Shown: positions 3,309 to 62,500 of the stretch, in pieces
How the letters are laid out: the number at the start of each line of letters is the position of its first letter
Numbering within the stretch: position 1 is the stretch's first letter
Assembly (NCBI GenBank): GCA_943704425.1
Contig: CALSCP010001679.1
Span: 83,430-147,429, forward strand
Direction: 5' to 3'
Source of the DNA: Ministeria vibrans ATCC 50519
Taxonomy: Eukaryota; Protista; Filasterea
DNA length: 64,000 nucleotides
Made by a program: the position numbers and the translations under genes
The notes under the pieces: generated by a model
The model's input: only the letters and a program-made list of their open reading frames with translations
Databases searched by the model: none
What the model was told of the DNA's origin: nothing

Positions 3309-6300
3309 TCAACTCTCTGGGTCCGTTCCGTACTCACTCTCGTCGGTGCTGAAATTCACATCGAGCAACGGCGCACTCAGCTCTTTCTTGACGACGTCGG
3401 CATACGTGAGCGGACACAACACTCCCTCTGCGTCTCCCACCGCCTCCTCCCCCTCCTTTGTGTTCTCGTCCACTTTCTCTGTCGGCATGGATGTGTTGCG
3501 TATCGTCTCAACACTCGCACGAATAGGACGGGGCAGGCAGAAGCGGAATGGGTAAAGGAGACGCGCAAGACGGAGGGTCTCCGACGAGTCCTGGAGCACG
3601 TCGCGCGCACAGCGAAATGCCTCGAGAAAGTGCGACATGTCACTCTGAAAGCACTCAGTGGTCAGTTTGTCGGGCGACGAGAGGGTAAAGAGCAAATTGG
3701 AATAGTGCATAACATAGCGACGGGTCGCAGTCAGACGCAGAGTGGCATCGACCATCAAGTGGCGCACAGTCGAGCGCAACAGGTCATTCTGCGCAAACCG
3801 CAGTCCGTCAAAGGTCAACAATGACTCCTCCACTAGCCCAAAGAGCAGTTCTTCTGTCTCCTCCACAGGCAGCGCAAAGACCGAGGCAGCCGCACACGGG
3901 TCAAACGGAGTGGCAAAGATCGAAAGAAGCATCATGGAACTCTGAACGAGAGAGAGAGTCAGTATATCACGAGATCGATGAAAGAGTGAAAAGGACCTTT
4001 TGCTCTTGTTCGAGCAGATTGAACGTCTCAATGAGCCCAATGGATTCGGCGAGTTTCGCTTTGGGGTGATCTGCAGACTCATCGGGCGCACTGAGGCGCG
4101 CAAGAACACCCTCAATGCGACTGAGTGAGAGGCGTTTAAGCTGCGAGCTGAGCACACGAATGGCAAGTGGGAGGAAAGACGCAGCACGAGCAAGTTGGAG
4201 GGACAGCGAAGCAGTTAGGGATGGTAGGAAATAATGCACGAGCGACAGACTAGTAAAAGTGATGGAGAAGGGAAAACGAACAGAGAGAGAGAAAGAGAGA
4301 ACGTGATGGAATTGAGTAAGTGATTGACTAAAGTGTGTGTTTTTCTACCTTGATTCCTCTGATAGCTCACCAATTCGCCTAAACCACACACACACAAAAA
4401 AAAAAACAATATTAAGCAAAAAATAATAATAACGATAACTTTGGTACAGATTGAGTGCGTTTGGCGCAAAAGACTCAATTTCAATGCGACGCCGCGATGT
4501 CACCAACACAAGAGCATCGTGTGCGCGCGGAAGAAGATCCTATGTTGACACACAACATTCATCATCAAACACCAAAAAAATTATTATGGTCAAAGTGCGT
4601 GACTCTTACAGTGACAAGAGAGAGATTGGAACAGTTTTCAATCACAAGAATTGAACGTTTTCCGCTAAACACGTGGTTGTATTCAGAGCGAATATGCCCA
4701 CTGTCCTTTCGATCAATGTGCTACAAGAGAGAAAATTCAATTCGATAAATTAAAACTTGATTCGTTTGATCACTTGTTTTACCTTTTCCGGGAATTTGGT
4801 GTGAATAATAATCGTCATAGCGTCTTCAATGGATAAATACTGGAGCAAAGATAGAGAGAGAGAGAAAGGAAGGAGAAAGAAACAAAGTGATAAAGAGAGA
4901 GAGAAAGAAAGGAAGGAGAAAGAAACATAGATAGAGAATAAGTAGTTAATCTATTGCAAAATCGACAAAATTAAAAGACGAATAATTTAATGTACTTTGT
5001 CGTTTTCAAACCCTTTGAGACTGACAAAGAGCCAATTGTGCGGGAAAATGGGTCTGAAACGCTCAGCCAATCTCTGAGCGAGAGCGGATTTACCCGCACC
5101 GGCAGGACCAAAGAGACAGACCACGTGACAGCTCACGCGCGAAGACGAAAAGACGCGCTGTTCAATCAACTAACAGACAGCAACAGAAAAGTAAGAAGGG
5201 ATAAGGAACAACAAAAAGAGATAGAGGAAGGCAGGGAGGGAGAAGAATCGTAAAGGAAGAGAAAACAAACGAGAAAGCGTGAGGGTCAAAATTGGCACAA
5301 TAATGAAACACACAAAGATAAATTAATACTACTAATCCTACATGACAATCAGGTAGATAGAAAAAACTTTACACGTAGTATTGTAAAATGACAACCCGGC
5401 ATAAAAAGGGGGTTTGTTTGTACCTTAATTTCGGATTCTCTGCCAACCAATTCCGGCGAGACAATCTCAGTGTCCTCATTCGCACTTGCGTTGACTTTCC
5501 ACGCGCGAGACAGTCTCTCTTGCACAAGTGACACATCTAGTACCTGAAATAGCCAATAATTAAAGAGGCTTCTGACGCTTCGGTGGATCAGATTGTGCTC
5601 TCACTTCAACAGAGCCGTCGCGTTTGATGAATGCGTGTCCTGTGTTGTTGAAGTAGACGGGCGAAATTCCCTTCGAGACATGAATCTCGAGAACAAAGAA
5701 GTCCGGTTGGTCGTCTGCGTTGTACTCGCGACGTCCCTTGCGCTGCTGCTGCTGGTGGTGCTTGGACGACGCAACTTCGTCAATGTACATCTCAATCTCG
5801 TCGTCGTGTAGTCGTGCGCCTTTGCGTCCCTTTTTGCTTTTGATTGGGGATGTGGGTGATCGAGCTTGCTGGGGATGGTGGGATCGTTGTACAGGTACAA
5901 GGCGGACGCGCAACAATGACGGATCAACCTACAACAGAGTCTGCACAGTGAACTTATCACTGGAGTTTCATACCTGAGGACGAAACTGCCCAATCTACAA
6001 AAGCGAATGCAACAAATGAGTCCAACGCACCCCCAATCGGTTGCCAGTGCACCCAAGTACCTGTGAGTCGATAGTCAAGTGGATGTCGTCGCGCTGCTTG
6101 CGCGTAAGCAGCATTCCGCGCACAACGCCATTGTCTACACACCACACGAACTCACATCGACCAAACACCCACTAAGCACCACATTCCGCGCACCTTCAAT
6201 GCCGCAGTACAACGTCCCGCCGTCCGTATTCTACAAAGACGCCCCAGGAGTCAGCCGCAGTGCCGTGGGAGCGCACAGAGAGCGTACGAGAAAGGCATTG

Positions 6301-13339: not shown

Positions 13340-14667
13340 TTACAGAAGGGAAAAGCGGATTTGCAGTGAAACATGATCAGAGGGGATGTGTTCGTTTGGT
13401 GCGGGACCGTATGGAATCAATTGACTGAGACGCAGAAGGCGACGAGTCTGGTAGGAGGAATAAATAGGAAAAGGCTGTTAGCGATGCACAAGTATAATAT
13501 TAATTATAAACAGTTTGTTGTACGTGAGTGATGCGAAGCGAGGGCGACAAAAGTGCATAGTCGACGTAGCGAGCGTCTTCGGGGGAGATAAACGTGGTGA
13601 CGGGCGGGTCTGGGTCATCGTAAGCGGGGACGGGGTAGGCCGAGCGAAGTGGAGAGAGGGCCAAGGCGCCTGCACGTGCGTCGACGTGATCGCCGTGAAG
13701 ACCAAGCGTGCGGAAGTGTGCTGTAAGGTCCTCCTACACACACATATATATACAAGGGAATGTCTGAGAGAAGAGGATCCTTGATTGGTGCAACAAAGTG
13801 TTGTACCTGACGAACAATTTGACGAGCTGAAAGCTCCGCCTGTGTGTGGTGTCCCGAGAAGAGAGCACGGATGGAACCGATGTACTCAAAGGAACCTTCC
13901 GTGATGAGTTGATACAGAGGCGAGTGGGCGACAATATTAAAGTCGCCACACAACATCTGATGGGGGGTTTCATGGGCGGCGGCGATTTCGTCAATGGCCG
14001 CGCGCAGACGAACGTACTGGAGCAACTTGATGTCGCCCCGTCGTGGATTGTACAGAAGATGGGTGGTTGCCAGCACAAGTGGCGGTGTCGATGGAGGCAT
14101 CTGGCGGTCGCGTAGAACCACAGCAAGAGCAACGTTCTCGCGCTGCAAATCATCGGGTAATGCCTGAAACAAGTTCGAGAGAGAGAGAGAGCAACGTTGA
14201 GTAGGAAATTAAGAGTGACGCAAGGTGTGCCATACTTCAGAGCCGAGCCAAATAGAGTGGTGCGCGACAAGATCAAAGCGCTCGGGGCGGTAGAAGATGG
14301 CACAGCCGTCGGGTTTGTCGCCGTGACGATTGTAGTGCAGGCCGACAAAGCCACGTCGTCCCAGCATCGGTTCAAACCAACGCTGAAACGCACCCTCTTC
14401 GCACTCTTGCAAACAGACGACATCGGCCCGTGCGTCGATGATGTCGCGCAGCAGAAGGCGGCGGCGGTTGTTCCAAGCCAAGTTGTCGCGTCGCGTGTGC
14501 GTGTACAAGAAGCGATGATCTTGCAAAAGCCGATCGCTCAGAACATTCAGCGACACGAGTGTCGCCGGCCGATCGACCGCGTGTGTCCGCGGCTCTCGCG
14601 ACGGCACCCACTGGCGTCTGAGTTCGACAGGGACGGGATCGGGCGGGGGACGTGCTCGTCGCGCCAT
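13340..14667 (-). CDS. ANGEL: Angel-family EEP (CCR4/nocturnin/Angel) phosphoesterase; exons ~14667-14236, 14163-13807, 13733-13524, 13447-13340
   Basis: SLNVLSD..H..LY, DVVCLQE, DGCAIFY, Angel-type THLLYNPRRGDIKL, LCGDFN, VDY and PSDH motifs. Start codon uncertain. Confidence 0.88.
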
Positions 14668-15118
14668 TTGCTCAAACCCTTCTCGTCCCAACGGTGCCAC
14701 CTGGTGCAGTAGCCGGCGCGATCCCGTGCAGCGTCTAGCGAAGTGCTGAAGAGACAATATCGTGTTTGAGGAAGAGAAGACTGGACTCACATGAGTGAGT
14801 ACTGAGTGATAAAAGTCACATCGCACTCACACTGCAAACCACTCATCAGTGTCGAATGTGTATTGACGTGCACAGCCACCACATCCGAATAACACCCATT
14901 ACCACATATGCCACCAATACGATTAGCGTGTATCTGTGGCGCGATCATTCATCGACCATGCGATCTCCCATCACATCGCATTCGTCACTAAAAAAAGACT
15001 CAGTCGAAGAATGAATAAAAACAAAAGAAAAAAATCGATTCACCATTTTTCGTCTCTCGAACACAATTGGACTTCACCCTTCGCCAACGGTCCTCAACGG
15101 ATTTCACAACACTTCACA

Positions 15119-18100
15119 ATGACAACATCGGCACAGACGCCCGCCATGACGGGCCACAAATACGCAATTGTCATCGGACGAACATTTTTCAACTCGAACA
15201 CGCTCGAGCTTGATACGCTACCAGGGGTCGGGGCGACGGTGCGCAACATGGCGGTTGNNNNNNNATGACGGGCCACAAATACGCAATTGTCATCGGACGA
15301 ACATTTTTCAACTGGAACACGCTCGAGCTTGATACGCTACCAGGGGTCGGGGCGACGGTGCGCAACATGGCGGTTGACCTTGTGCGCAACGGGTTTAAGA
15401 CGGTCGTGCTCGCAGACACGCGCATGGCGCTGTCGCAGCGCTCGTTCGACTCGCCGACGCTGGAACAACACTACGTCGACTTTGCGGTCGATGCGACGCA
15501 GACGCAGAAGCTGTCGTGGGTGCAGGCGGACACGACACGCCCACACATCCGCACGGCACTCGTTGGCCTGGCTGCCATGGGCTCTGGGCACCTGCCGGGT
15601 CCGCTCGACGACTTGGTCATTTACATCTGCTCGCACGGCGTCCTCAACGCCAGCGACGGCTCGTACGGCGCAGCACTCGCCGACGTGCGCTGCACCAAGC
15701 CGAGTGTCACCGATGCGAACGGCGACGTTGTGCACCCCGCCCAGTATGCCGACGCGTACACGATGGAGCAGTTGCGCGACGACTTGTGCGTCGAGCAAGA
15801 GCAGCGCTGGCGCAACACTCTTGTGGTGCTCGACACGTGCCACTCGGGAGGGGCGTTTGATGCGACGGAGGTGTCGTTGCGCGACTGTGGCACGCAGAAC
15901 ACGCACGACATGCAGAGGGTGTTCCAGAAGGAGTCGTACCAGTGCTTGGCGGCGGTGCCCTGTTCTGCGTCGGCGTTTTGTCTGGAGCGCGGCACGGTGC
16001 TGCACATGGCGCTGCGACGAGCATGGCTGTCGCCTGGTGGCGATGGTGGGGCGTTTGCGCGAGCGCGCGAGGGAGCGGCGCGGTGGGCGACAATTGGACG
16101 CGTGGCGGACCGTGTCAATGTGGAACTGACGTCGCTGATGACGGAGATTGTGCAGAAGATGCCGGCGCATCTGAAGGAGCCGGACGACGCGTACTTCTTC
16201 CGACAGACGTGTCTGTTGGGCCGACTGCCGTGGCGCGTGGCGCACAACACGGGGGAGTTTGTGGTGTTCAACGGGAAGTACACGGAGCGCAACAAGCTGG
16301 CCATGGTGCCTGGTGTGCCGGCGAGTTTCACGGGACGCGCGAAGGAGTTGAGGCAGTTGGAGGCGCGACTGAAGCAAAGTGGGACTGCGGCGATTGGGAA
16401 CGTGACGGTGTCGGCTGCGGGCGGAGTGGGCAAGAGCACACTGGCAGCGGAGTATGCGCGACGGAATGCGCATGAGTACCACTGGATCGTTTGGGTGCGG
16501 GCAACGAGTGCGACGACGATGATGGGATCGTATCGGGAGGCAGTGCGGTACATTCCACTGAAGCATGTGGATTTAGCGAACGCAACGAATGAAGAGGTGG
16601 TGGGGGCAGTGAAGGAGTGGCTGGCGCACGAAGGAGGATGGTTGATGGTGATGGACGGATGTGATGCGATCACAGAGGAGATGAGTGAGATGATGCCCGG
16701 TGGCGTGATGGAGGGGAAGGTGGTTGTGACGACACGATTGCGTCGTGTGGATGAGTTGGGGGCGTTGTTTGGAGGAGGAGATGCACCGTTGCAGTTGGGG
16801 GTGTTTGACGAGGAGGAGGGAATGGAGTACATGCGCAAGCGACTGGCGGGTCGAGCAGATGAAGATGAGGAGGTGCAGAAGATTGTTGCAAGGTTGGGAG
16901 GAATGCCACTGGCGCTTGAGTTGGCGGCAGCATATCTGGTGGAGACGCCACATGTGAGTGCTGGAGAATATGGCGCACGGATGGAGACAGACATATTGGG
17001 GACGTTGAAGAGGCGGAATGGAGCAGGGGGGTTGGAGGATCGTGTTGTGGCGACGTACGAGCCGGGTGTTGCTCGGGCGATGGAGATTGGCGGGCGGGAG
17101 ATGGTGCGGAAGATGGTTGGAGTGATGGGGTTTTTGGAAGGGAGTGGGATGGAGGTGGAGGTGCTGCGGCTGGTCGTGGTGGGGGAAAGGAAGAAGGAGA
17201 AGGTGGAGGAAGACGAGTTTGACGTTGCACTTGGTGCGTTGTGTCGACTGTGTGTGGTTGATGTGAGCAAGAGTGTGGTGTCGATGCATCAGTTGGTGCA
17301 GGATGTGTGTCGGGTGGTGGCATTTGGAGATGAGGAGGAGATGTGGAGGGAGTTGCAGAGGATGGGGAGCGTGTTGGAAGAGGAGATTGGCAAAGATGCA
17401 CATATTTATGAGGATATGGAGTGGAGTCGACGCGTGGGAGTGCATGGAACGCGAGTGATGGAGTGGGCGTGTGCTGAGGTGGGGAGAAGGCGGAGGGGTG
17501 GAGAGACGGAGGAGTACGGCGATGGTGTGGTGTGGCTGGGAATTCGGCTGAGTGTCGTGTGGAGATTTTTGGGAATGTATAAGTTGGCTCGGAGTGCGGC
17601 TGAGAGTGCGTGTGATTGTGTGTGTGATAAGAGGTGTGCGCTTGCTGGGAGTGCGTTTGGGACTCTAGGCGATGTTTGCAAGTACCAAGGGGAGTATACG
17701 CGAGCGTTGGAGGTGTATGGTTGGGCAGTTGCGATTCAAGAAGAGAAGCTGGGGACAGATCATGCTGAGACTGGCGACACATTGAACAACATGGCCATTG
17801 TGTTTCGGGCACAAGGAGACTACAGTCGTGCTCTTGAGTACTATGAGCGTGCTCTGACCATCTGTGAGAAGTCTGTTGGTCCCGACCACCCATCCACAGG
17901 CGACACATTGAACAACATGGCTGTTGTGTTTGAGGCACAAGGAGACTACAGTCGTGCTCTTGAGTACTATGAGCGTGCTCTGACCATCCGTGAGAAGTCT
18001 GTTGGTCCCGACCACCCGTCCACAGGCGACATATTGAACAACATGGCCATTGTGTTTCGGGCACAAGGAGACTACAGTCGTGCTCTTGAGTACTATGAGC

Positions 18101-19770
18101 GTGCTCTGACCATCTGTGAGAAGTCTGTTGGTCCCGACCACCCGTCCACAGGCGACATATTGAACAACATGGCCATTGTGTTTCGGGCACAAGGAGACTA
18201 CAGTCGTGCTCTTGAGTACTATGAGCGTGCTCTGACCATCTGTGAGAAGTCTGTTGGTCCCGACCACCCGTCCACAGGCGACATATTGAACAACATGGCC
18301 ATTGTGTTTCGGGCACAAGGAGACTACAGTCGTGCTCTTGAGTACTATGAGCGTGCTCTGACCATCTGTGAGAAGTCTGTTGGTCCCGACCACCCGTCCA
18401 CAGGCGACATATTGAACAACATGGCCATTGTGTTCGAGGCACAAGGAGACTACAGTCGTGCTCTTGAGTACTATGAGCGTGCTCTGACCATCCGTGAGAA
18501 GTCTGTTGGTCCCGACCACCCATCCACAGGCACCACATTGAACAACATGGCGAATGTGTTCAAGGAACAAGGAGACTACAGTCGTGCTCTTGAGTACTAT
18601 GAGCGTGCGCTGACCATCAAAGAGAAGTCTCTTGGTCCCGACCACCCATCCACAGGCAACACATTGAACAACATGGCGAACGTGTTCAAGGCACAAGGAG
18701 ACTACAGTCGTGCTCTTGAGTACTATGAGCGTGCTCTGACCATCCGTGAGAAGTCTGTTGGTCCCGACCACCCATCCACAGGCAACACATTGAACAACAT
18801 GGCTGGTGTGTTCCAGTTACAAGGAGACTACAGTCGTGCTCTTGAGTACTATGAGCGTGCTCTGACCATCTTTGAGAAGTCTGTTGGTCCCGACCACCCA
18901 TCCACAGGCCAGACATTGAACAACATGGCCATTGTGTTCGAGGCACAAGGAGACTACAGTCGTGCTCTTGAGTACTATGAGCGTGCTCTGACCATCAAAG
19001 AGAAGTCTCTTGGTCCCGACCACCCATCCACAGGCACCACATTGAACAACATGGCGAATGTGTTCAAGGAACAAGGAGACTACAGTCGTGCTCTTGAGTA
19101 CTATGAGCGTGCGCTGACCATCAAAGAGAAGTCTCTTGGTCCCGACCACCCATCCACAGGCAACACATTGAACAACATGGCGAACGTGTTCAAGGCACAA
19201 GGAGACTACAGTCGTGCTCTTGAGTACTATGAGCGTGCTCTGACCATCCGTGAGAAGTCTGTTGGTCCCGACCACCCATCCACAGGCAACACATTGAACA
19301 ACATGGCCATTGTGTTTCGGGCACAAGGAGAATACAGTCGTGCTCTTGAGTACTATGAGCGTGCTCTGACCATCAAAGAGAAGTCTCTTGGTCCCGACCA
19401 CCCATCCACAGGCCAGACATTGAACAACATGGCCATTGTGTTCGCGGCACAAGGAGATTACAGTCGTGCTCTTGAGTACTATGAGCGCGATCTGGCCATC
19501 TGTGAGAAGTCTCTTGGTCCCGACCACCCATCCACAGGCCAGACATTGAACAACATGGCTGGTGTGTTCCATGCACAAGGAGACCGAACTCGTGCCCTCG
19601 ACTATTGGCAACGTGCTTTGACCATCCGTGAGAAGTCTCTTGGCCCCGACCACCCGCACACCAAGCAAACCCGCAAGTCCCTCAGTGCCCTCCATCCTAC
19701 CGCACAACCCGCATGCCTCACCAACTCAACGAAGCCCCCAAACCAATCTGCCGACTGTATCATACTTTAA
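15119..19770 (+). CDS. NLR-like protein: caspase-like peptidase C14, NB-ARC/STAND, 15+ TPR repeats (42 aa) and a C-terminal CaaX. Intronless; the 5' end is duplicated across a gap, and the intact ORF runs 15265-19770.
   Basis: His/Cys dyad VIYICSHG...VVLDTCHSG. STAND motifs FTGR, Walker A AAGGVGKST, WLMVMDG, VVVTTR, GGMPLAL and SMHQLVQ. Kinesin-light-chain-type TPR units TLNNMA.VF..QGDYSRALEYYERALTI.EKS.GPDHPS. Ends CIIL*. Confidence 0.93.
15146..15376. other. 112-bp direct duplication flanking the N gap at 15258-15264 (probable scaffolding overlap)
   Basis: 15146-15257 equals 15265-15376 except for one base (TCG vs TGG codon). Confidence 0.85.
17770..19659 (+). repeat. Tandem array of 15 x 126-bp TPR-coding units
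   Basis: Exact 126-nt period. Units 3-5 are identical in protein, and units 7-8 recur as 11-12. Confidence 0.97.
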
Positions 19771-19841: not shown

Positions 19842-20734
19842 TCATTCATCGCCCGCCAAAGGCACAAACATCGATCTCTCGCGCGCTTCGGGTTTCTCCA
19901 ACTCAAAATGGTACATCAGACGAAACACAAGGGCTGCCACAGCAGACACGAGAAAGAGCAGTGAGCCGACACAGAATTGCCACACTCCCGCAACTTCCAC
20001 AGAGGCAAACAGAAAGCAGGTGGACCCAGTCACAAAGAGCACACAGCCCACAATAGTCGCCGTGAAGGCCGCCATGTGCACCCAGTGGTACCGTTGCAGC
20101 GACGCCGGCGGGATCGTCGAGAGCACCCGATCCGCCCGACACCAATCGACCATCGCCACCACCACATAGTACGCTGAGTCCACAATGAAGATATATGTGC
20201 CCGTGCGCGTCGCTTTGGGCCCCTCCTTGGGAAAGAACAGACAGCTGCCAATAAAGAAGCCAAAGTTGGCAACGCAGTAGAGCAAGGGCAGTCGCTCGAC
20301 AGGCACGCGCGGTCGCTGAGTCGTCGTCAGGAGCCACTGCTCTGCGCCTTCATCGTCGTCTGGCTGCGACCCACTCGGGCGGTACAGCTCAATCCAGTCC
20401 CACGTGCTCGCCATCAGAAAGGCCAGCGACCCGATAATGAACAGATCCACACCTGCAGCAGAAGGAGATGAGCAAAAGCGGAACGTGGCAACAAAAGCGA
20501 AAACGGGATTGAGCGACACCCAACCGATTGTGTCGTACCGATTCCCTCGAGATGAGCAAAGCGCGGAAAGAACAAGACGGAGCCTATGATGAAGGCCAAG
20601 GAGCCAATGACATACAGGCAGCCGTTGCCCAGGTGCGCGGCCAGGCGGTCGGCCTGTGGCAGCAGCAACAGTGCACTGGCACATCGCATCTGCCGTGTCG
20701 TCTCATTTGACCCTCGCGCGTCTTCCGCCGACAT
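19842..20734 (-). CDS. Multi-pass membrane protein with three YrhK-like helical hairpin repeats; exons 20734-20539 and 20452-19842
   Basis: Repeated F(I/V)xGSxLF/GxxxFIxGS motifs (AFIIGSVLFFP..G|VDLFIIGSLAF; FFIGSCLFFP; FVTGSTCFL..GVWQFCVGSLLF). One GT-AG intron restores the frame. Confidence 0.75.
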
Positions 20735-21237: not shown

Positions 21238-23425
21238 TTACACAATCGGAAAATGCTCAACGACAGACGGCAACGGTGTGTCATCAGAGTCAGGCATCTG
21301 AGGCAACGCCATGCTCAACGAAAAGTACACATCTTTGGGTGACACATTCACCGTGAACACAAGCAACTGATCAAGTGAGACAGGCAACAGCTCTTGCAAC
21401 GGCAGCGACGCCTGGGTCGCCGTCTCGCCCGACGACGCAAACAACTGCGGCACCACCGTGCCATTCTGTGACACAAGCGCCACCGATCCGTCCGCCGCCG
21501 CAGTCAGGTTCCACCCAACTGAAAACGATACAACTGCCACAGTGGCACTCTTGCGCACTGCATTCAGTCCTCGCACAGCGAGTCCCCGCAGCTCATCCAC
21601 GATGGGCACGTCCACCGCAGAACCCACAGTCGCCCACATGCCCGCTCGATTCCGCACTCGCCCGATCACTCGAATCACTCGACCCGTCTTCCTCTCCTCC
21701 TCTTCATCGACTCCACGCATCGCCACCATATTCACCAAATCTCCATTCTCAAGCTTGATACTCTCCACCAGTCGTGTCACAGTGTCATTCACACGAATCT
21801 CCACTGCATCCACTCCGCTCTCGGCATCGGTGCACCCCACGAGACGCACAGCAAGTCGGTCACGCCGGTGCACCCACTCAGGCGCCACCAGCCCACCCGA
21901 GCACAGCGGACCCGTCGCATCCGCACGCACCCCATTGCTCCGCAAGTGTACTGTGTCTCCCTCACTACCCACACCCACTTCCACTCGCGCTTCGTACTCC
22001 ATGTTGTGCACCAGTGCCAGTCCCTCCACCTGTGCCGCATACGCTGTCAGATTCCGCGCAAGTGGTCCCGCCACAAGCACGCCCGTTTGTTTCTCATGAA
22101 ACGACACAGTCACCATCGGTGCACCCACAAACAGCTGTTCGTTGCCCAGCGACGCCACCGCCGCCAACCAGTGCACCCCTAGCACCCCTTGCGACGCATC
22201 CACCACATCGATATCATTCGGCGTTGCACTTGCCGTTGTCGTCGTCCCGTTTTGCCCCGCTGTGTCCACCACAGCCTCAAAAGGTGACTGCACCAACACT
22301 CGCCGGACCCGTCCAGCAGCTTTGCTCCATCCCGTCGCCCACAGTCCCGCTCCATTGCGGCACTGCACTCGCGCACGGTACGACACCCCTTCGTGGAACA
22401 CCTCCGTCGCACTCACGACTGCACCATCCATCGAAACAGTTGCCACCCGCCCTCCGTCCACCACCCACACCGACACGTCCTGGCCGTCCACGCCACTCTC
22501 GCTGTCACTGCACGCCTGCCAGGTGACCATTGCATGCGTCCCATTCGCAACGGTAAGTGACACGTTGGCCACAAACGGCGCACTCGTGTCCACGCGCAGC
22601 GGCGCACTCGTCCCATTCGTCCACGTGATGCCATCGCACGCCAAAGCACGCACAAACGCACGCACACTCGCATTCTGTGGCGTCCGCTGCCACTCGTCCG
22701 TCAACGACACAGATGACACGTCGCTCAGTGGCACAGCCTGTTCTGGAATCAACACTTGACCGGTAGCATCCTCTTCGAGTCCCACCAACACCTGCTGGCG
22801 GCACTGACCCGCACCAAAGGCTCCACCATGCCAGCTCACAGTCACCGCCCCACCACGCATCAAGAACCCACTCGAGGTCGCCAGGGGACCCAACAGAACA
22901 CGCGTCTCCGCCATGCCCACGCATGGAACCATGCCCGTCGCTTGCACCGCTGGCACCACCGTGCTCACATCACTGCAAACGTGAACAAGCCCCCCATCGT
23001 CGTACTCTGCCAGCACGCACGCCACAATGGGCTCCATGCGTACTACCAACACATTGGCAACGACCACCGTGGTACCATCCGCAACACCGCACTGCTGGCG
23101 CACCTCAGACTTGCCCACCAGTTCAATACACGTCCGTGACTCGACCGGCTTGGCTCCCCATCGTGCACCCGCCAATCCCGTCACATTCACCGACACGTCC
23201 ACTCGAAGCGCCGATGCACAATCACTCGCCCACGCCCCTTGTGGCTCCCACGACACAATCGATGTACGCGGCGCACTCGCGGCGAGAACTATGGGAACAC
23301 CAGCAACGTCTTGACACGCAAGCTGACGCACCAGTCCCGCAGCATTCTCCACGCGCACCGTCACATACACGCGTGTGTCGTCCGAGTGCACACTCACCTC
23401 GTCCGCCGCCACACACACGTCCACA

Positions 23426-23466
<41 letters not shown>

Positions 23467-26400
23467 CGCCGTGGCCACCGCCTGAGCTAGCTCATCGGAC
23501 GAAAGCGCACGCCACGACACTACGTCGTCGTCGCTGCTGGCACGCCCCACCGCATAGCGAATGGCCACAATCGGACTCGCACTGTCCGCCACAGAGCCAA
23601 TGGAAAAGAGGGGTACACAGTGCGACGCGTTGCTCGAGCCTAGACCAGGCACACGCACCGCCTCCGCGCAGTTCAGAGTCACCGCGTCAGCACTGGTAAA
23701 GTCCACACGGAACGACCCCGTTCCATTCGACGTGCCGCAGTCGCCACAGTGACTACACACCGTCGCCACCAAAGTACACTCATCGCCGTCACTCAACACC
23801 TCTGCCAGCGGCATATGCGTCTCCGTCACCAGACCCGTCGCCACAACACCACTCTCCACCGGCACCTCGATACGTCCCGAGATGGAACACTCCACAGCAA
23901 CAGACCAGTTGGCAGCGCGAGCACACGCGCACGAGCGCACACCCATTTTCACAGTGTCCCATCGCACTCGCAACCGATCCGTGTCACGCAAATACCCATC
24001 ATCTTCGTTCACTCCCACCATACTTGCGGACACATTCACCGTATTGCACGCTGCCACAATGGACGACGACGTCACGTTGTGCCGCACAGCACCACCGACG
24101 CCATTCACAACCCGCACCTGCAAAGAGTACGTGTGACAGGCACGCACAAACTCGCTCACGGCCGTCATCGAGTACACAGACGCCTCAACACTCTCCGACA
24201 ACACAACCCACTCGGAGACTTCATCCACGCCTACCAGTCGCACCGACACCTGTGCCACACCCGACTCCACATCACGCGCGTCCAACTCAAGCATCACATC
24301 ACTCGTGGCATTCTCCAGCACACACTGCGTCGAACCAAACAACCGGGCGCGCAGCACCACGGGCACGGTCCAGTCAAGGACCACTGCTCCCTCAGGACGC
24401 AACTCGCCATTGACCACGGGCAACGCTCGTGTCGTCGACTCCTGCTCGCTCACCGTACACACACACACCCACGTATCGCCATCGTCGGTCGCACTTGCAC
24501 AGGGGCCACAGCCACCAACAACAATCTCTCCATCGCGCTCACGCACAAGATTCACCGTCAGACTCGCGTCTGTGGTCACGACAGTCACGTTTACCGCCAC
24601 CTCGCCCGTCTCAAGCAAACGCGACTCGCTTTGCACCGACAACACTGTCTGTGACACGCGAGACGTTGGTGCCACAGGCGCACCTGCACTCTCAAGCACG
24701 CCCACCAGTCCCGCAGCGTTGGTTGCCGTGCACGACACCGTCGTTGACCCATTCACGCCCGACACACGCACAGGACCCAGTGTCAGTCCATGGCCCACAT
24801 TGCTGCGTCCATCTCCGCGCATCGGTCGCATCGGCACACGTCCCACAAGACTGCCCGCGTCCGTCTGGCACACATACGCAAGCATGCCGCTCTCCTCGTC
24901 CGCACATCCATTGACAAACGCCGTCAACGAGTCCGCACTGGCAATCACCGTGTGCACTCGAGAGTCGCTGCAATTGGGCGCGGTCGTGTCCAGCAACAAC
25001 TGTACCACCGACGCGTCACTGATACGCCCTGCCTCATCCACAGCCACCACCTCGACGCGGTACACTTCCCCTTCGCTTGCAAGCACCGTCGAAGGCACAG
25101 GCCATTCGACACGGCCACCAAAGCGACGCGACGCCGTCACCACACCCGCACTGGTAGATGCAGTCGTTGTGCCCGTCACTGCGCTCACAACGCGCACCCT
25201 GTACTCAAGCACGCTGCTCACGTCGTCCGCAAACGCATCCCACACAAGTGTCAGAGCGGAGGCATTTGACGCGACAAACACACGCTCGCCACTCTCGTCG
25301 ATGTGCGCACGTAGCCACGAAACTCCCTGTGCGCAAGAGAGAGGTGACGTGGCATGCGGTGCAGCTGTGTCGATCCACAACGGAATGCTGGTGACCGAAC
25401 GAGCATAGAGCTGGGCCACGTTGCGCACAAGGAATGTCACATAGAGCGCCTGTGCTTCGGGAAGTCGTTCAAATGCGTCGGTCGTCACCACTGTGCCTGC
25501 ACACGTCAATGTCTGTCCTGCCGACGCCGTCACGGTCCAGGCAAGCGCATCACCTGTCAATTGCGCACCGCCGGCCGCCGAACCAATCATAACGAGACCA
25601 TCCACCAGCGCCGAGTCAACGTCTCCAACATGGTTCACGCACACGCTAAGTTGCGTCGCATTGCCATCGTGGCGCAGGTACACTGCCGAGTCGCTCGCAA
25701 CCACATTTTCCATGACACTCGTGCGCCACTGCGCCTGGCCAATCGTCGGCGCCGTTGTGTCGATCACTAGCGCACCCGAAAGCACACGTCGACACCCGCC
25801 GGCGCCGTTGCACGCCACGACAAACGCACGCAAGCGATGCCCATGCGCCAAAACTGGCAGGTCGCTGGGAACACGCAATGCGAGCTCGGTGCGCAGTTGG
25901 ACATCGCGCGCGTACGCCACGGTCCACACAAGCGACCCGTTGGCATGCTGCGTGCCATCGTTCTGCTCAACTTGCACAGAGAAGGCCGCAAGCGGACTCG
26001 CTCCCCCCGACTCAAACAGGTCCCAGCGCACCACTATCGAGTCTGCTTGCGCCTGGCCCACCTCGGCCAGGTCACGCGTGGCATTTTCGCGACGACGCAC
26101 CTCGGCACGGTCCACCGGCACAAAGAAAACGCGTCCTCCGAGGACACCCGCGTCGTCGTGTGTCAGCGCAATGCGCTCGCGAGTAGACACGGTCATGTTG
26201 GCACGATTGGTCGCGTGCAACATCGAATACACCGTCGTACCGGTGATGTTCACGTCGGTACGGTACACTGGTGATGAGGTCGTGGCCGGATTCACATCAA
26301 CGCACGCCTGTGCATCAAGCCCCTCCATACACCAACGTAAACTCGCCAGTCCCGTCTCATCGTCCGCCGCCTCAAACCGCAACCCAACACGAGTCGCGTC

Positions 26401-29400
26401 GCGCGTCCAACGACCCGACACATGCGACACTCCCGTCAACGTGGGTGCCGTCGCATCCGCCACAAACCCATCCGAGGCACGACGCGTCTCCAGACCCCCA
26501 CCATTCACCGCACGCAACCACACATAGTAGCGTGTGCCACTCACAAGCGAGTCGGTGGCAAAGGTTGTCGACAGTGCATACACAGACGCGGCCGGAGTCC
26601 ATGCAATGGCAAAGGCCGACTCGGCAACCGCCACCGTGTGGGGGTCGCTCAGCGTGGTCACAGCAAAGTCGAGACTCACAATGCCCGTTTCGTTGTCGGC
26701 CACCGAGTCCCACGCCACAGTTGTCAGCACTCCCGCACCGACTGCCAAAAACTCCGCATCGTGCAATGCGCCAATGACCGGAGCTGTACTGTCCAGTACT
26801 GCCCCGTCCGATACCACCGCCACAGCGGCCCACAGGCCCGCACCATTGGCAGCACGCACCGAACACGCATAGGCGCGGCCCTCGTCAAGCGACGCACTGC
26901 CAAACGTCACACTCGTCGCTGTGCCCGTCAGCTTCTGCACAGCAACACTCGGCTCGTTGCTCCACGACGCCACCTGTAGCCCCAGGGTGTCACCTCGCAA
27001 CAGTGTCACTTCAACATGCATCACCTGCGAATGTGCGTCGGTAAACAGCGTCGCGGGCCAGCGGCAGGAATACGACGACGCGTCCATAAACCAGTTGCGG
27101 TCGTGCACGCCAAGCCCATCAGCGACGGTCAGACCCGTCGCAATGACGGGCGCGCTCGCGTCCACAAGCACGCCGTCGCTGTACGTCTGCGTACGCAATC
27201 CCGCCGTGTTGCGCAAGTCCAGCATACACCGATACCGCACGCCGTCGACAAGCGTCACGCCCGCAGAAAACACCGCCGTGCCATTAGGCAACTGACTTGC
27301 CGTCAGATTAAGCGCACCCAGTGCACACGACGACGCCTCCGTGCCCACACACACCGTGGCTCCCGCAAGTCCCGAGTGCACATCCTCAACGTCACGCCAA
27401 GCGCATGCCAACTGTGTGCTGTTCGTCTGTGTCTGCCTGTCCGCCATATCGTCGTCGTCACCGTCAACGAGTACACCAACCGTGGGGCGAGTCGCGTCGA
27501 CGAGCAGACCGTCCGTCACAACGGCACTCGTTGATTCCAGCGACGCTCCATTGCGTGCCCACACATGCGCATACACCGTGGTACCTGACGGTACACCGGC
27601 TCCCAGTGCCGGAGCACACAAACAGCCTTGAGCTAGCTCCTGCACGGTGGAGCTGGCCTCCGCCAGTGGCACACTCGCATCCACAGCGCTTGCACTCCAC
27701 ACCACATGGTAGCTCGCCACGGCCGACTGGGCATCGCCAAAGCCCGACCACGACACACACAAATGACTGCTGTTCGTCGACAGGTCAGCGTCCATCGCGC
27801 CACATCCGTCCCATGACGTGCCCGTCGTCGGTGGCGTCGTGTCCACCACTGCGCCATTCGACACGCTGCGTCGTCGCAGTCCCGCCCCATTCACCGCCCA
27901 CACCACCGTGTAGACAGTGTCGCCATCCGCAACGGCACCCGTCGCAAGCGACGTGGTCGCTGAAAGAGTTGTCACGGAATGCACCGCACCCAAATTACAC
28001 GCGTCGGACCCACTACTGTCCACGCACACCTGGTACTCGCTGATGCCCGACTCATCGTCAACACTCGCCTCCCACGACGCACTCACAGCGGCGGTGGACG
28101 GCACAAAGGCCAGGTCAGCACCGTTCGTCGCAGACGGTCGATCGTTCACAGAGAACGCTCCGGGTGAGGTCGTGTCCACTCGGAAGCAGTCCGAGTGAAC
28201 ACGTTCGCTCCAGACTTGCGCTCGCCCGCGCACCTGCACGCGCGTGCACAGCAAGCTCGAGTTCATGCCACCGAGAGCCGCGTTGGTCCAGGTGAACGAC
28301 AGGGGTGATGCACTCGCACTCACCACCGCCCAGTCGAGCACGAGACTCGCGGTAAGTTCGGTGCCACTCGTCACCGACACCCGATACGAATCGAGTGCAA
28401 ACGCATTGGCACTTGTCGCGGCCGTCCACGACGCCGTGAATGTATCTCCCTGCGACACATAGTCGGCGTCCGAGCCGGGGCACGACGCTGACATATCGCA
28501 CACCGACAGTGAGGACACATCGGGCAGCACATTGTCCACGTCGGCACCGTCCGTCATGGCCATCGTCGTCAGGCCTGCACCATTCTCCACCATCACCGTA
28601 GCGTACACGCGCTGTCCATTGGGCAGCGTCAAGCCAGTGAGTGTCGCACACGGCGTGTCATTCTCAACCAGAGTGAACGCCGCCAGCTGCATACCTCCCA
28701 TGCTTGTGCCCAACGCCACTTGCGCCCGCTCCATAAAGCCACTCTCAACATCTTCTGCATCCCAGCACACAGTGTACATTGAGACAAGCGGCCACACGTC
28801 CACGTCGTCCGACGCATCGAGGCCCAGCGACGTTGCATACGGCAAATCCACCACAAAGTTCACGGTGGGAGCAGTCGTGTCGGCCGTGACCAGCACACTT
28901 TGCGAGACCATACGCAAACCCGCCTCGTTCACGGCCGTCACCACAGCGCGGTAGCGTGTGCCGCTCACAAGCTGATGCCCGCAAAACGAGTTGAGATTGG
29001 TGCTCGCCGTCGGCGATGACACTCCTGCATCCGTCACCGCCTGTGTCGCCTCGTCAATCACGTGCACTGTGTACAGCACGTTGGTGTGTGGGTCCACTGC
29101 TTGTGTCCACTGCAGCGATACACAGTCAAGATCGCTCCAGCCCGTGACGCCCTCGTCCGCTCCGCGCACCCACGATACCGAAAAGTTTTGAGGGGGCGAC
29201 ACGTCCGCCACAAACCCATCGGAACACTTCTCGGCTGTGTGACCGACTGCATCGGTCGCACGCACACACACGGTGTAGAACGTTCCCTCGGTGAGCGACA
29301 CCTCGCTCAACAGCATGCCCACATTGGTGGCACTCAGCGGTAGCGACTCGGTGTGCACCGCAGCAGCGATGTTGGTGGCGGAGGGACGCGGGTGGACGCT

Positions 29401-31401
29401 CGCCGTGAGCGACACCACAGCGGTGCCCACGTCGCTTGCGGCCGCCGACCAATACGCATACACCCGCTCCGTGCTCACAACAAAGTCCACATCGCCACCG
29501 CCGACACTCGCGTCGGAACTATCCATCACATCGGTCAACAGAGGCGCTTGCAAGTCCACCAAAAGTGCCTCGGACGCAAGGTGGCCACTGTCGCGGCCCT
29601 GTTGCACGCCCGCCGACGACTCATAAAAGACGCTGAGTACCACTTCGACACCGTCGGCCAGGTTGAACAGGGTGCGCGTATGTGTTACGCACGCTGGCAA
29701 AGGGGTGAGTGCATTTGTGACGCGTGCACCCGCCTGACCATTAATGGCCGCTTCACAAGCGCCGCCGGTGCTCCCTCGATTTGCACACATCCAGTGCTCA
29801 ACGCCACCACAGTTCACCGCGAGACCACACCACGTGATGCTTGCCGAGGCAGACGTGAGCACTCGCGTCGGCAAGCCCGACAGCATTGTCGTCGTCAGCG
29901 GTGCCACGGTCACAGTCGATGCAGTCGTGTTGACGTGTGCCCGCAACGAAGCGTCCGTCGGACACATGTACGTCGCACCCGTACAGTACTCTTGCAGGTC
30001 ACAGGCGTCTGCGAGCGCACCACATAGCGTGCCGGCCGGCTGAAGCCCACGAGGCGGCGCGGTTGCCGACACACCATCGCAGTAGGCGTCAAGCTCGCAC
30101 TTGGATCGACGGGCGAGAGCGAGATGGTGCTCCGACGCGGATCGCAATGGATACGAGACGATCCCTCCACTGCTGTCACAGGTCGGGTCCTTTTCACACA
30201 CTTCAGGTGCACGCGGAGCATTGGTCACAAGTCCCGTGCACGCGTATTCGTCCTTGCACGTCTCTTCATAGGTGCACGAGAGCGCATCGACGCACGATGC
30301 GCCAATGAGCGGACAGTAGGAGAAACTTGGGTCGTGGGGTGCCTCGCACGCAGTGCCCGTGTACGACGGATTGCATCCATAGCACTGGCGCGCCGCTCCT
30401 GGTGCAATGCCCGCCGGGTCGCGCTGGCCTTGGGTGTAGCAGACGCCGTCAATGAGACAGCGGTCGGTGCGCACGCGCACCAGAGGTACATTCGTCCATA
30501 TGCCTCCCGTCGAGCAGGTCGGCGTGAGCGAGCCCGAGTACACCTCCATGCACTCACTGAGTACCGTAGTGGCAAACGTCACGGTGCCCGAGCACGACGT
30601 GGCCGTGCACGATGTCTCAATGGAAACGCAGTTGGGCGACAGTGCAGGACAGGCGACGGTCAGTGGAGGGCAGCAGGCACTGTGGCCCTCTGCAGCAATG
30701 TACGTCGCTGCACACGACTTGCACGCAGTGCCTGCCGTCGAATACTTTTGCGTGGAACACAGCGTACAGGAATCTGTACCACCGCTGCTGCTACGACCCG
30801 CCGCACAGTCGGTGCAGGAAGGTGCGATCGCAGGCGAGTACTTGTACATGGGACACGATGAGCAAACGGTCGCGCCTGCCGCCGCGTACATTCCTGGAAA
30901 TCAAAAAAAAAAATTAAAAAAAAACCACCATCTTATTACTCGTGCGAGAATGGAGAGACTATAATATTTGATATACCTGCAGTACAGTTGGTGCACGACG
31001 AAGCTTTGTCCAACGAAAATTTGCCTCCAGGACACTGCAAGCACGAACCGCTGATAGCCGGCGAATAGCGACCGCCTGTACAGTCAGTGCATCCCGAAGC
31101 AGCCGCCGGCGAATAGGTCCCTTCGGCGCAGCTCAAGCAGGACGAGGGGGTCCCGCCTGAAGAATATGTTCCGGCCGCACATCTGCAAAGGAGTGTGTGC
31201 AGTATGAGAGCAAAATTGACTTGTCTTTAGGCTTTCCACTGTTTGTGGCGTCAACGTACGAAGTACAGTAGGAGCAGGTCGAGGTACACTTAGAACCACA
31301 CGACTTGCAGCTCTTGCAGCCCCAGCACTTGGTCTTGGTGCACTTGTTACAGCTCTGTGCGTCCAAGAAACAGCGAGTCAGATTCGGTCAGACTCACTCT
31401 A

Positions 31402-59129: not shown

Positions 59130-59495
59130 ATGATTCATTGCGTTTGGGTGGGTCTTCTTTTCGCTCTGGCCCGAACGACCACCGTCGATGCATTTTGCGA
59201 AAGCAGCCCCTGCACCATGCATGGGTTTTGCGACGAGGCCCTTGCCGTGTGCGACTGCGATGCAGGCTACACGGGCGTTGCGTGCGAATCCTTTTTTGAC
59301 ATTTGCCTTTCGTATCCCTGTCAAAACGACGCACGCTGCATTCGCGGCACCAACGCAACCACCAAGGAGAATCAGCTTGTTGACATTGATCCCTACCAGA
59401 CGGGAGACGATACGCTCTTTGGCGCAGGCATATTTTCCAGTTCGCGGTATCGATTTTTTTTTTTCCCTTTCTTCCCCCCTTTTTTTTTTTTTTCC

Positions 59496-59532
<37 letters not shown>

Positions 59533-62500
59533 CTCATTAGACAACGCCTTCTTCTCCCGGCCTCTCTCCTCTCCGTTGTGGGCCTTGCAAGTGGACCCAT
59601 CCACTCGTTGGCCTACAACGTCCGCGACTTCGACGGCTCAGTTTCAGAGACGACCATCAAAATTGCGCGAGTCGACTCGACCGTCACGGAACTCACATAC
59701 AATCTCTCTGCCATCGTCCTCTCGTTCACAACCGTCGCCGCGCTCACCAATCCTCCCTCTGGCATTGGCTGGCGCACCCACCTCTTCAACGTGCAGCCGT
59801 TTGTCTACGACGGACGAAGCGGGCTCGTGTTCGAGCTGTGTTTCCGCGCAAGTGCCGACGCGCGCCACTTGGTGCAGTCTGTGGACATTCCGGGAGGGAA
59901 CCTCGGCTTCTTTACCAAATCACTTGAACCTGCTTGCTCGGTGACGTCCAACCCCTTTCTTGTGCGCGACGCTCCTGTGTTGCGCCTCAACGCAACCGTA
60001 GTAGAGCCGCAGAGCGCCAACGCTCAGCTCTTCAGCTGTGTGTGTCTCGCAGGGTACACGGGAGCCGTGTGCGAGACGGACGTGGACGAGTGTGCGTCAA
60101 GTCCGTGCACCAACGGCGCCACTTGCACCGACGAAATCGACCAGATTACCTGCACGTGTCCACTTGGCTTTGTCGGCGCTGCGTGCGAGACGGACATTGA
60201 CGAGTGCGAGTCGTCGCCCTGCTCCAATGGCGGTTCTTGCTCTCAAGGTTCCAGCACCGACCTATTTCAGTGCTTTTGCGCGGCCGGCTTTACCGGAATT
60301 ATGTGCGAGACGGACTTGAACGAGTGTGCATCCAACCCTTGTGTCAATAATGGCACGTGCTCGCAGAGTAGTACACCCGATATGTTTGTGTGTGCGTGTC
60401 CAGCGGGCTTTACGGGTGTTTGCTGCGAGAGTGATGTCGACGAGTGTGCATCGTCACCCTGTGCCAACGGCGCATCGTGTTTGCACGCTGTTGGTGTTGA
60501 TGCTTTTGCCTGTGCATGTGCAACAGGCTTTACTGGCTCGCGGTGCGAGACTGACTTGGACGAGTGTGCCTCGTCGCCGTGCCTCAACGGAGCAGCTTGC
60601 CACCAGGGAGCGGCACCCAACTTGTTTGTGTGTGTGTGCTTGGGCGGCTACACAGGAGATGTGTGCGAGACGGACGTGGACGAGTGTGCGTCGAGTCCGT
60701 GCAGCAACGGCGCCACTTGCACCAACACAGTCAACCAGTTTATCTGTCTGTGTGCGTCTGGGTATTCTGGGAACCAGTGCGAGACGGACATTGATGAGTG
60801 TGCAAGCTCACCTTGCGATACGGGACGGTGTGAAAATGCTCTTGGTGGCTTCTTATGTCACTGCCCCGCTCGCTATGTGGGGCGCACTTGCAGTGTGGAA
60901 GAGATAGCGCCTTTACTTGTCGGTTCGTTTGCGGGAACCATTGCATTTATTGTCTTGGGTGTAGTTGCCTGGAAGCTCCAACAAAGATTCTACTGCTTTC
61001 TTAACATGCGCCAAGTGCACACATTTATGTTGCGTCTTTCACCGTCCATTTACCCAGAAGTGGACGACACCGGCCAAGGGCAACTCTTTTCTGTTGGCAG
61101 CAATGTTAACTCCTTTTTCATCCACCTTATCACTCCTTTGACTGTCATTAACCTACTATTCTGCAAAATTGTTGTACGGCCCACTCCGCAAAATACTAAT
61201 ATTCGGCTTATTCCTGGCGCCATAAAAGTAACCCGAAACTGCACTATTTTAAAATGCGAGCGCTTCAACGAAGTGGGAATAGCTGGGCCGTTTGTCGCCA
61301 AGATTTTGAAAAGCGAAAATCCTGAAGTCCTCGCTGCTAATAAGTAAGTCTTCAATGAATATTAATAATAATGACAGTACTATAATAATAATAATACTAA
61401 TTATTACTATTATTATTATTGTTATTATTATTATTATTATTAATTTATTCTTATAATTATTATTATTCTATTATTATTATTATTATTTCAAGAAATGAAA
61501 TTTCAATGACGCGACGATTGGGACTATTTTCCAAGTACTGTGTGCACATAATGGGATTTGCCAAGTGCCCAATCTTAAACAACATCACCGAGAAGATTAT
61601 TGTTATGCCGTTTTACCGCAACGGGTCTTTGGAGGTAAACAGAAACGACAAACACAAACAAGAATAAGGTCCATGTCCATTGTCCATGTCAACTTTCCTC
61701 ACATAATAATAATAAGAAGAAGAAGAAGAGGAAGAAGAATATAACCCATTAATTATTAATGATACAATCATGATAATAATCATGATAATAATAATAATAA
61801 TAATATTGTTATTGTTTTTTGCCTGGTTTGTATTTTTTTCAGAACTTTCTGTACACATCAAACCAAACGTCCACCGAAACCGTAAACTTTGAAAAACGGG
61901 TAAGGAACAACTGTGAACATTAAACAAAATATTGGACCTTTTGATTGGTGTTTGTAGCTTTCATTTGCCTGTCAGATTCTTGAGGCAGTGGCATATTTGC
62001 ACTCGTTCAAGATTGTGCATCGGTACCAAAAAGAATAAATTTAGAATGACTTACTTTCGTCTCTTGCGCTATAATTATGTACTGATTATCTTCATAGCGA
62101 TTTGGCGCTGCGCAATGTGATGGTAAGTGACGATGGTTTACGAGTTCTTCTCTTTGACTACGGCCTGTCGTGGTTAATCTCGGAGACTACAGACGGTGAA
62201 CGAATTAGGTAGCAACACACACAATTCTCCCATGAATCTCAAATCTAATTGAGATCTGCTTATATTTCTCCCATAGCGCTTCAGCATTGGCGCGCCTTCC
62301 ACCCGAAGCGGATCCATGGTTGAGGGATGTGTGCCATGCTCAAATTTCACTCAAGGACAATTTAGAGAAACAACTAGAGACGAGTTCCGAGGCGATATCA
62401 GACATGGTGATGAAGGAAAACAAAATCTACCGGCACGGTGTCACGTTGACCGCATCCGACATGTACAACCTCGGCATTCTATTGTGGTGCATGTTTCGTA

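Follow-up and report, generated by a model that had tools for sequence, protein, structure and literature searches.

Does a single gene of a protist unite the protease, the switch and the sensor of a cell-death or immune receptor in one polypeptide? The question is raised by a 64,000-nucleotide stretch of the Ministeria vibrans ATCC 50519 genome (GenBank assembly GCA_943704425.1, contig CALSCP010001679.1, positions 83,430 to 147,429 of the forward strand), hereafter the window, in which a first-pass annotation had described a single-chain caspase-NB-ARC receptor at 15265-17330 (window coordinates are used throughout). The start of this range was reproduced in our analysis. Its end marks only the end of the NB-ARC module (688 of 1,501 residues), and the gene extends to 19770. 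The open reading frame (ORF) is uninterrupted over this length and all three domains could be assigned within it, as had been proposed. We consider it rather likely that the product is a cytosolic receptor of the STAND (NLR-like) class that carries its effector, a clan-CD cysteine protease, in the same chain and serves as a defence or death trigger. The gene is composed of the following parts, given in nucleotides and in amino acids (aa).

15265-19770, + strand: single ORF of 1,501 aa, with no internal stop and no sign of an intron
15265-16284, + strand: caspase/legumain-fold (clan CD, C14-like) domain, aa 1-340
16300-17334, + strand: NB-ARC (AP-ATPase STAND) module, aa 346-690
17335-17652, + strand: linker between NB-ARC and repeats, aa 691-796, without confident family match, conserved among paralogs
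17653-19662, + strand: TPR sensor array, aa 797-1466, with the core units at 17773-19662
19663-19770, + strand: C-terminal tail, aa 1467-1501, with CIIL as its last residues before the stop codon

The analysis confirmed that the N-terminal domain (N-domain) has a clan-CD caspase/legumain fold with an intact catalytic dyad. The His-Cys pair (SHG and DTCHSG) that had been noticed upstream of the NB-ARC domain and the TPRs was found at the reported places, with His124 in ICSHGVL (15634-15636) and Cys192 in VLDTCHSGG (15838-15840). An alignment of the N-domains of 26 paralogs (alignment A1) was used to build an AlphaFold2 (AF2) model, which reached a predicted local distance difference test score of 88.9 and a predicted template modelling score of 0.90. 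The Foldseek matches listed for this model were MALT1, caspases, metacaspases and legumain, together with the unannotated protein GSU0716. Superposition with VIA-align on legumain, metacaspase-4 and caspases-3, -6 and -7 gave Z scores of 17.0-17.8, well above the background stated for the tool, with root-mean-square deviations of 3.1-4.2 Å over 207-235 residues; the sequence identity with Arabidopsis metacaspase-4 in this alignment was 22%. The first-pass annotation had made its proposal depend on a caspase-hemoglobinase fold of this domain, and the model, judged by Foldseek and VIA-align, adopts that fold.

Profile comparisons gave the same assignment. In an hhalign comparison, alignment A1 matched the profile of distant library matches with a probability of 99.9% (E 6e-33), a value that is not fully independent, as the template set had been collected with the A1 profile itself. 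In this comparison SHG coincides with the HG motif of canonical C14 peptidases and DTCHSG with their DxCxSG motif, and all four of the distant matches sampled carried the Pfam family Peptidase_C14. Among the paralogs, Peptidase_C14 was matched by 12 of the 26 N-domains (Pfam, E ≤ 1; best 7.4e-7), and three of them passed the PF00656 cut-off of 21.4 (L016, L019 and L022, with 24.0, 24.2 and 27.4 bits; labels of the form L0xx denote fetched loci, and C-numbers denote contigs of the organism's own genome). The best curated family for the domain was the NCBIfam family caspase_w_EACC1, matched by 24 of the 26 paralogs (best 4.4e-10), and the nearest ESM Atlas clusters were all bacterial Peptidase_C14. 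Sequence searches of the PDB with the N-domain, as a single sequence and as a profile, returned nothing meaningful.

The placement and conservation of the catalytic residues suggest that the domain is a catalytically competent cysteine protease. In the AF2 model, His124-Gly125 adjoins the strand of residues 116-128 and Cys192 lies just after the strand of residues 184-191, which is the canonical geometry. Among the 26 paralogs the His is kept in 24, the Cys in 24 and both in 23, and Asp51 and Asp190 are invariant. Asp190 occupies position -2 relative to Cys192. An Asp at this position is the pattern of metacaspases and paracaspases, whereas caspases have Gln. The Asp of the canonical "DA" motif is replaced with Thr in this protein, and compared to canonical C14 domains an extra helix (aa 64-79) and a β-hairpin (aa 134-162) are inserted.

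The switch module was recognized directly. Pfam NB-ARC (PF00931) matched aa 360-559 with an E-value of 1.6e-11 and 44.4 bits against a cut-off of 23.5, and all of the NB-ARC motifs are present: the P-loop GGVGKST (Lys390), the Walker B motif LMVMDG (Asp464), TTR (aa 489-491), GMPLA (aa 546-550) and the MHD-like MHQ (aa 674-676). G41 and K45 of the P-loop and D119 of Walker B, in the numbering of a 14-sequence alignment (A2), are invariant. Single-sequence phmmer of the NB-ARC part against the PDB found nothing, and a paralog profile was needed; with this profile, AfsR (1.9e-18), NRC3 (6.7e-18), ZAR1 (1.9e-17) and Apaf-1 (1.4e-16) were matched. The best matches to the NB-ARC-TPR part reached only about 25% identity and comprised bacterial TIR-NB-ARC-TPR proteins, actinobacterial "FxSxx-COOH system" TPR proteins and fungal patatin-NB-ARC-TPR NLRs, none of which carries Peptidase_C14. 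No death-fold family (CARD, DEATH or PYD) was found in Pfam scans of the whole protein and of the N-terminal 860 aa.

The sensor is an array of highly homogenised repeats. In Pfam, TPR_12 matched 16 stretches and TPR_10 was matched with an E-value of 5e-213; since the TPR families swamp the whole-protein output, the parts were scanned separately. The core array consists of 15 tandem units (14.9 copies) of 42 aa or 126 nt each, with 92% nucleotide matches, and variation is concentrated at unit positions 2, 3, 9, 12, 13, 31 and 35. Of these, positions 2, 9, 12 and 13 of helix A line the concave ligand-binding face of a TPR. At the seven hypervariable codons the nonsynonymous divergence (dN) was 0.64 versus a synonymous divergence (dS) of 0.13, and at the other 35 codons of the unit dN was 0.005 versus a dS of 0.097; the hypervariable positions were picked after the data had been viewed, and the contrast is indicative rather than a formal test. 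The same hypervariable-repeat pattern has been described for the repeats of fungal NLRs (Dyrka et al. 2014, PMC4986451).

Counting the paralogs in the genome had been proposed as a check of the receptor, and the count came to about 31 loci. These account for 36 matches to the N-domain on about 29 scaffolds of the 29.7-Mb assembly. The forms that follow were distinguished among them.

NB-ARC located C-terminal to the caspase domain: about 20 loci (phmmer, 18; Pfam, L016 and L022)
Caspase-NB-ARC with TPRs like those in the window: at least 9 loci
Caspase-NB-ARC-WD40 propellers, with an Apaf-1-like sensor: L022:1525-7053, − strand, contig C138, 1,843 aa
Caspase with LRRs and a Roc-like ORF downstream: L020:1791-7866 (C1075), L021:1878-6861 (C2822) and L024:1803-7716 (C837)
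Little beyond the caspase domain: L017 (364 aa) and L028 (275 aa)

The protein at L022 resembles Apaf-1 except for the fused protease at the place where a CARD would be. The Roc matches downstream of the LRR subfamily were near or just below the Pfam cut-off. At L020 and L021 the caspase ORF and the LRR ORF are in different frames and overlap or adjoin each other, so that they may be joined through an intron or a frameshift.

In nine paralog pairs, dN/dS was 0.23-0.50, a range that applies to the caspase part and to the NB-ARC part alike. Because of these ratios, the paralogs are to be regarded, on sequence grounds, as constrained coding genes under purifying selection; purifying selection combined with a diversifying sensor suggests that they are in use. 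The window copy and L037 form a mosaic: dS was 1.6 in the caspase part and 0.41 in the NB-ARC part. The far greater divergence of the caspase part points to recombination between paralogs. Three pairs of paralogs lie on a common scaffold (C2085:41622-42629 on the + strand and 97779-98786 on the − strand; C837:26531 and 32288; C1075:24366 and 30402). The two copies on C2085 are inverted, lie 55 kb apart and gave identical match statistics to the query, which suggests a recent duplication.

Outside the genome, relatives are scarce. A word search with the N-domain among proteins of 825-2,626 aa gave no match. Exact look-ups of the receptor protein and of the YrhK-like protein encoded downstream of it gave no record either, in a library that may withhold entries from the organism's own genome. 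An exhaustive profile search of 1.84 billion representative proteins gave 323 matches at E ≤ 1e-3 and 13 at E ≤ 1e-10. Nearly all of the top matches were 91-99.8% identical to paralogs of the organism's own genome, not to the window copy. P0129 is located next to one of these near-identical matches on a single metagenome contig, and the metagenome contigs that were traced belong to one study (ENA ERZ23497041 and ERZ23497376; samples SAMN09406010 and SAMN09406036). The sole clear relative from elsewhere was P0132, a 557-aa fragment on a 2.2-kb contig (GCA_025491055.1, JAOQFC010032800.1; L052), with 31% identity over the C-terminal half of the caspase domain and the NB-ARC. With one clear outside relative among so many proteins, the family appears, by this search, to be lineage-specific. 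The source of P0132 could mark the nearest lineage that shares it. The more distant matches (E about 1e-6 to 1e-9 with the profile) were ordinary C14 proteins, some of them with nSTAND1 and WD40, as in the caspase-nSTAND1-WD40 protein P0153. The best of the distant matches, P0134, is encoded on a contig of prokaryotic style, immediately downstream of a small gene.

The likeness to the C14-STAND-TPR fusions of bacteria that had been pointed out at the outset proved apt, as the family that the domain matches best is a subfamily of caspases from bacterial defence. In the "System 4" of Kaur, Burroughs, Iyer & Aravind 2020 (PMC7159879), a constant N-terminal caspase is combined with about 50 C-terminal modules, including STAND NTPases. 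Experiments on KrAvs12 of Ktedonobacter racemifer, a caspase-Avs12 protein, show the path from sensor through STAND to caspase: once a phage protein is sensed, the small pore-former EACC1 is cleaved in a Cys-dependent manner, and the model for KrAvs12 places the cleavage after an Asp (Gao-lab 2025 preprint, PMC12642450). Our family shares with the bacterial EACC1-caspase systems the constant N-terminal caspase, the interchangeable C-terminal modules including STAND NTPases, and the superstructure-forming repeats. It differs from them in that no EACC1 gene was found, the family score is far under the cut-off and the host is a eukaryote; in addition, a helix and a β-hairpin are inserted in the domain and Roc-type modules are also used. 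The caspase domain probably derives from the bacterial EACC1-associated caspase systems.

Bacterial metacaspases or orthocaspases fused with NACHT, NB-ARC, WD40 or TPR were reportedly noted by Koonin and Aravind in 2002. Such fusions also place a Peptidase_C14-type domain, an AP-ATPase and repeats in one chain, whereas they are prokaryotic and mostly few-copy, compared to the roughly 30 genes in one eukaryote here. Bacteria are known to fuse a caspase-type domain to STAND NTPases and/or superstructure-forming repeats (Asplund-Samuelsson et al. 2012, PMC3501461; PMC7159879). In fungi, NLRs with CHAT (caspase-like) or S8 proteases cleave fungal gasdermins (PMC12881547). The fungal proteins are similar to ours in being eukaryotic STANDs with an N-terminal protease and homogenised repeats of the TPR_10/TPR_12 type that vary at few positions. 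In contrast, the protease here is C14-like and not CHAT or S8, the NB-ARC identity is only about 25%, neither a gasdermin gene nor a two-gene cluster was detected, and the host, with its giant proteins, its EGF and fn3 modules and an actin 97-98% identical to that of animals, is not fungal-looking.

The Apaf-1/caspase-9 apoptosome and the NLR inflammasomes likewise couple an NB-ARC-class switch to a caspase-fold protease, induced proximity is the natural activation model for both these machines and our protein, and L022 shares WD40 with Apaf-1. Unlike these machines, the present protein has no CARD, DEATH or PYD adaptor, its protease is covalently fused, its sensor is made of TPRs, and the residue at -2 of the catalytic Cys is Asp, not Gln. 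A limited literature search found no description of a C14-type caspase-NB-ARC-TPR protein in a non-fungal eukaryote, or of a family this large. We rate the gene as the eukaryotic version of a design already described from bacteria and fungi, and otherwise known mainly from anti-phage systems of bacteria.

From this architecture, a mechanism can be proposed for the receptor. A ligand would bind the homogenised TPR array through the hypervariable helix-A face. Binding would release the NB-ARC module from its ADP-locked state and allow it to oligomerise, and oligomerisation would crowd the N-terminal caspase-fold domains and switch on the His124/Cys192 protease. The active protease would then cut itself or other substrates, resulting in a defence or death response. 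The domains, the fold, the conserved dyad, the selection on the paralogs and the diversified repeats are observed, whereas ligand binding, oligomerisation, proteolytic activity, the immune or cell-death role and a bacterial origin are what we infer.

Several observations weigh against such a protease-armed receptor. The N-terminal 350 aa of this copy, taken alone, gave no Pfam match at E ≤ 1, and the caspase assignment therefore rests on the paralog profile, the predicted fold and the profile-profile alignment; against caspase_w_EACC1 (NF047832) the same 350 aa scored 21.7 bits (E 1.1e-4), short of the cut-off of 140. The model contains extra C-terminal strands (aa 314-320 and 333-335), which could block the dimer interface needed for induced proximity, as in monomeric metacaspases. 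According to Kaur et al. 2020 (PMC7159879), many of the caspase domains that take the effector position in related systems of bacteria are catalytically inactive. The partners of known systems were likewise not found. Gasdermin (PF04598), of which no gene had been evident in the window at first sight, was matched neither there nor elsewhere in the genome, in a search that was also silent in control genomes. EACC1 (PF19953) gave no match at E ≤ 0.1 in the whole genome, which is a draft searched with a short model, and no small ORF recurs upstream of the paralogs, where the bacterial two-gene system has the gene for EACC1, a small membrane protein, immediately upstream. Around the paralogs no large or small neighbouring ORF recurs, save the Roc-like ORFs 3′ of the LRR subfamily.

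The alternative that survives best, though we consider it unlikely, is that the protein performs regulated proteolysis apart from defence or death, in development, in stress or in conspecific self/non-self recognition as in the heterokaryon-incompatibility NLRs of fungi. The fungal STANDs with homogenised hypervariable repeats do serve allorecognition (PMC4986451), a role in stress is hinted at by the DnaK-like chaperones to which some of the EACC1-caspase modules of bacteria are fused (PMC12642450), and the window shows no pathogen-related context. However, a large recombining family with a hypervariable sensor and effector-switch-sensor modularity is the hallmark of conflict systems, and allorecognition is itself a conflict function, so that this alternative overlaps with the defence or death receptor that we favour.

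Slightly less likely again is a two-tier cascade, in which the fused caspase domain would be a recruitment or scaffold module that activates free caspase-only paralogs, like the CARD-CARD contact in the apoptosome. Short caspase-only paralogs do exist at L017 and L028, and some of the fused copies lack the His or the Cys (L012, L018 and L020:8031); for inactive caspases in effector position, dominant-negative or regulatory roles have been proposed (Kaur et al. 2020, PMC7159879). A pure scaffold, however, needs neither of the catalytic residues, both of which are retained in the window copy and in 23 of the 26 paralogs, and the short forms are just 27-36% identical to the window copy (tblastn).

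An origin of the gene in bacterial contamination or in faulty assembly is very improbable, for although it is intronless, has bacterial closest families for both the caspase and the NB-ARC-TPR parts and begins at an N gap with a duplicated segment, the intron-split housekeeping genes and the eukaryote-type genes in the window make contamination very unlikely, the same scaffold bears an EGF-repeat protein, an fn3 giant protein and a 9,043-aa ORF, the paralogs are spread over about 29 scaffolds including C2175 with HSP70, bacterial proteins reach an identity of only about 25%, and independent metagenome assemblies contain members of the family other than the window copy at 94-99.8% identity. The genes for HSP90, actin, tubulin and the translation GTPases of this genome are split by short introns, and the HSP70 on C2175, a contig that also bears a paralog of the family, is full-length and intronless. 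A single actin exon, searched by itself, proved 97-98% identical to cytoplasmic actins of bilaterians and 96% identical to a dictyostelid actin, which suggests an amorphean protist.

Two details concern the ends of the gene. The 5′ end is preceded by a further feature:

15146-15257, + strand: nearly identical duplicate of the initial 112 nt of the ORF; next to it, at 15258-15264, a gap of 7 N

The copy differs from the start of the ORF in one base, which gives Ser instead of Trp at codon 17, and the ATG at 15265 begins right after the gap. We read the duplicate and the gap as an assembly join and not as biology; for this reason, the in-frame upstream ATG 15119 may be the true start, adding 9 residues. 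At the 3′ end, CIIL (19756-19767) forms a CaaX-like prenylation box at the C-terminus of the receptor. The box was rejected as a family feature, as it occurs in none of the paralog C-termini that were read.

Downstream lies a gene for a YrhK-like membrane protein at 19842-20684 on the − strand (Pfam E 2.2e-20, two stretches), convergent with the receptor gene, the two stop codons being 71 bp apart. This gene does not recur beside the paralogs, and a functional link is unsupported. Upstream, a divergent gene at 13615-14826 on the − strand encodes a protein of the endonuclease/exonuclease/phosphatase family (Pfam E 6.4e-10) in two ORF pieces split by a stop, probably owing to a short intron near 14172-14212. 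Nearer the start of the window, the ORF at 3309-4190 on the − strand gave no match in a Pfam scan. Further along the window are two intronless giant ORFs, 31659-58790 on the + strand (9,043 aa) and 21238-30891 on the − strand (3,217 aa, with fn3), as well as a gene at 59188-61347 on the + strand for a protein of 719 aa in which five stretches match EGF; EGF and fn3 are animal-style extracellular modules, here in a protist. The assembly is scaffolded with long N runs, seen at L044:1435-4005 (− strand), L045, L046 and L058, and is rich in microsatellites of the (TC)n/(GA)n type, with translated poly-SL, poly-ER and poly-TH at exon edges.

In the death and inflammasome machines of animals, the sensor ATPase and the caspase are separate proteins joined by death-fold adaptors, whereas bacteria often fuse them. 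We put forward, as a tentative possibility, that a eukaryote took up a bacterial conflict module of the "constant caspase and variable sensor" type and expanded it into at least 30 protease-armed receptors with STAND and Roco-like switches, in which the free caspase-only paralogs may form a second tier. The result would be a caspase-based immune or death system without death-fold adaptors that evolved independently of the apoptosome and the inflammasome of animals. A eukaryote that carries caspase-STAND fusions by the dozen would offer an extant case of the fused arrangement in a nucleated cell. Such a system could be used to test whether a clan-CD protease becomes active by induced proximity when it is covalently attached, could show what such proteases cut where neither gasdermin nor EACC1 is present, and could show how eukaryotes take up and expand bacterial conflict modules.

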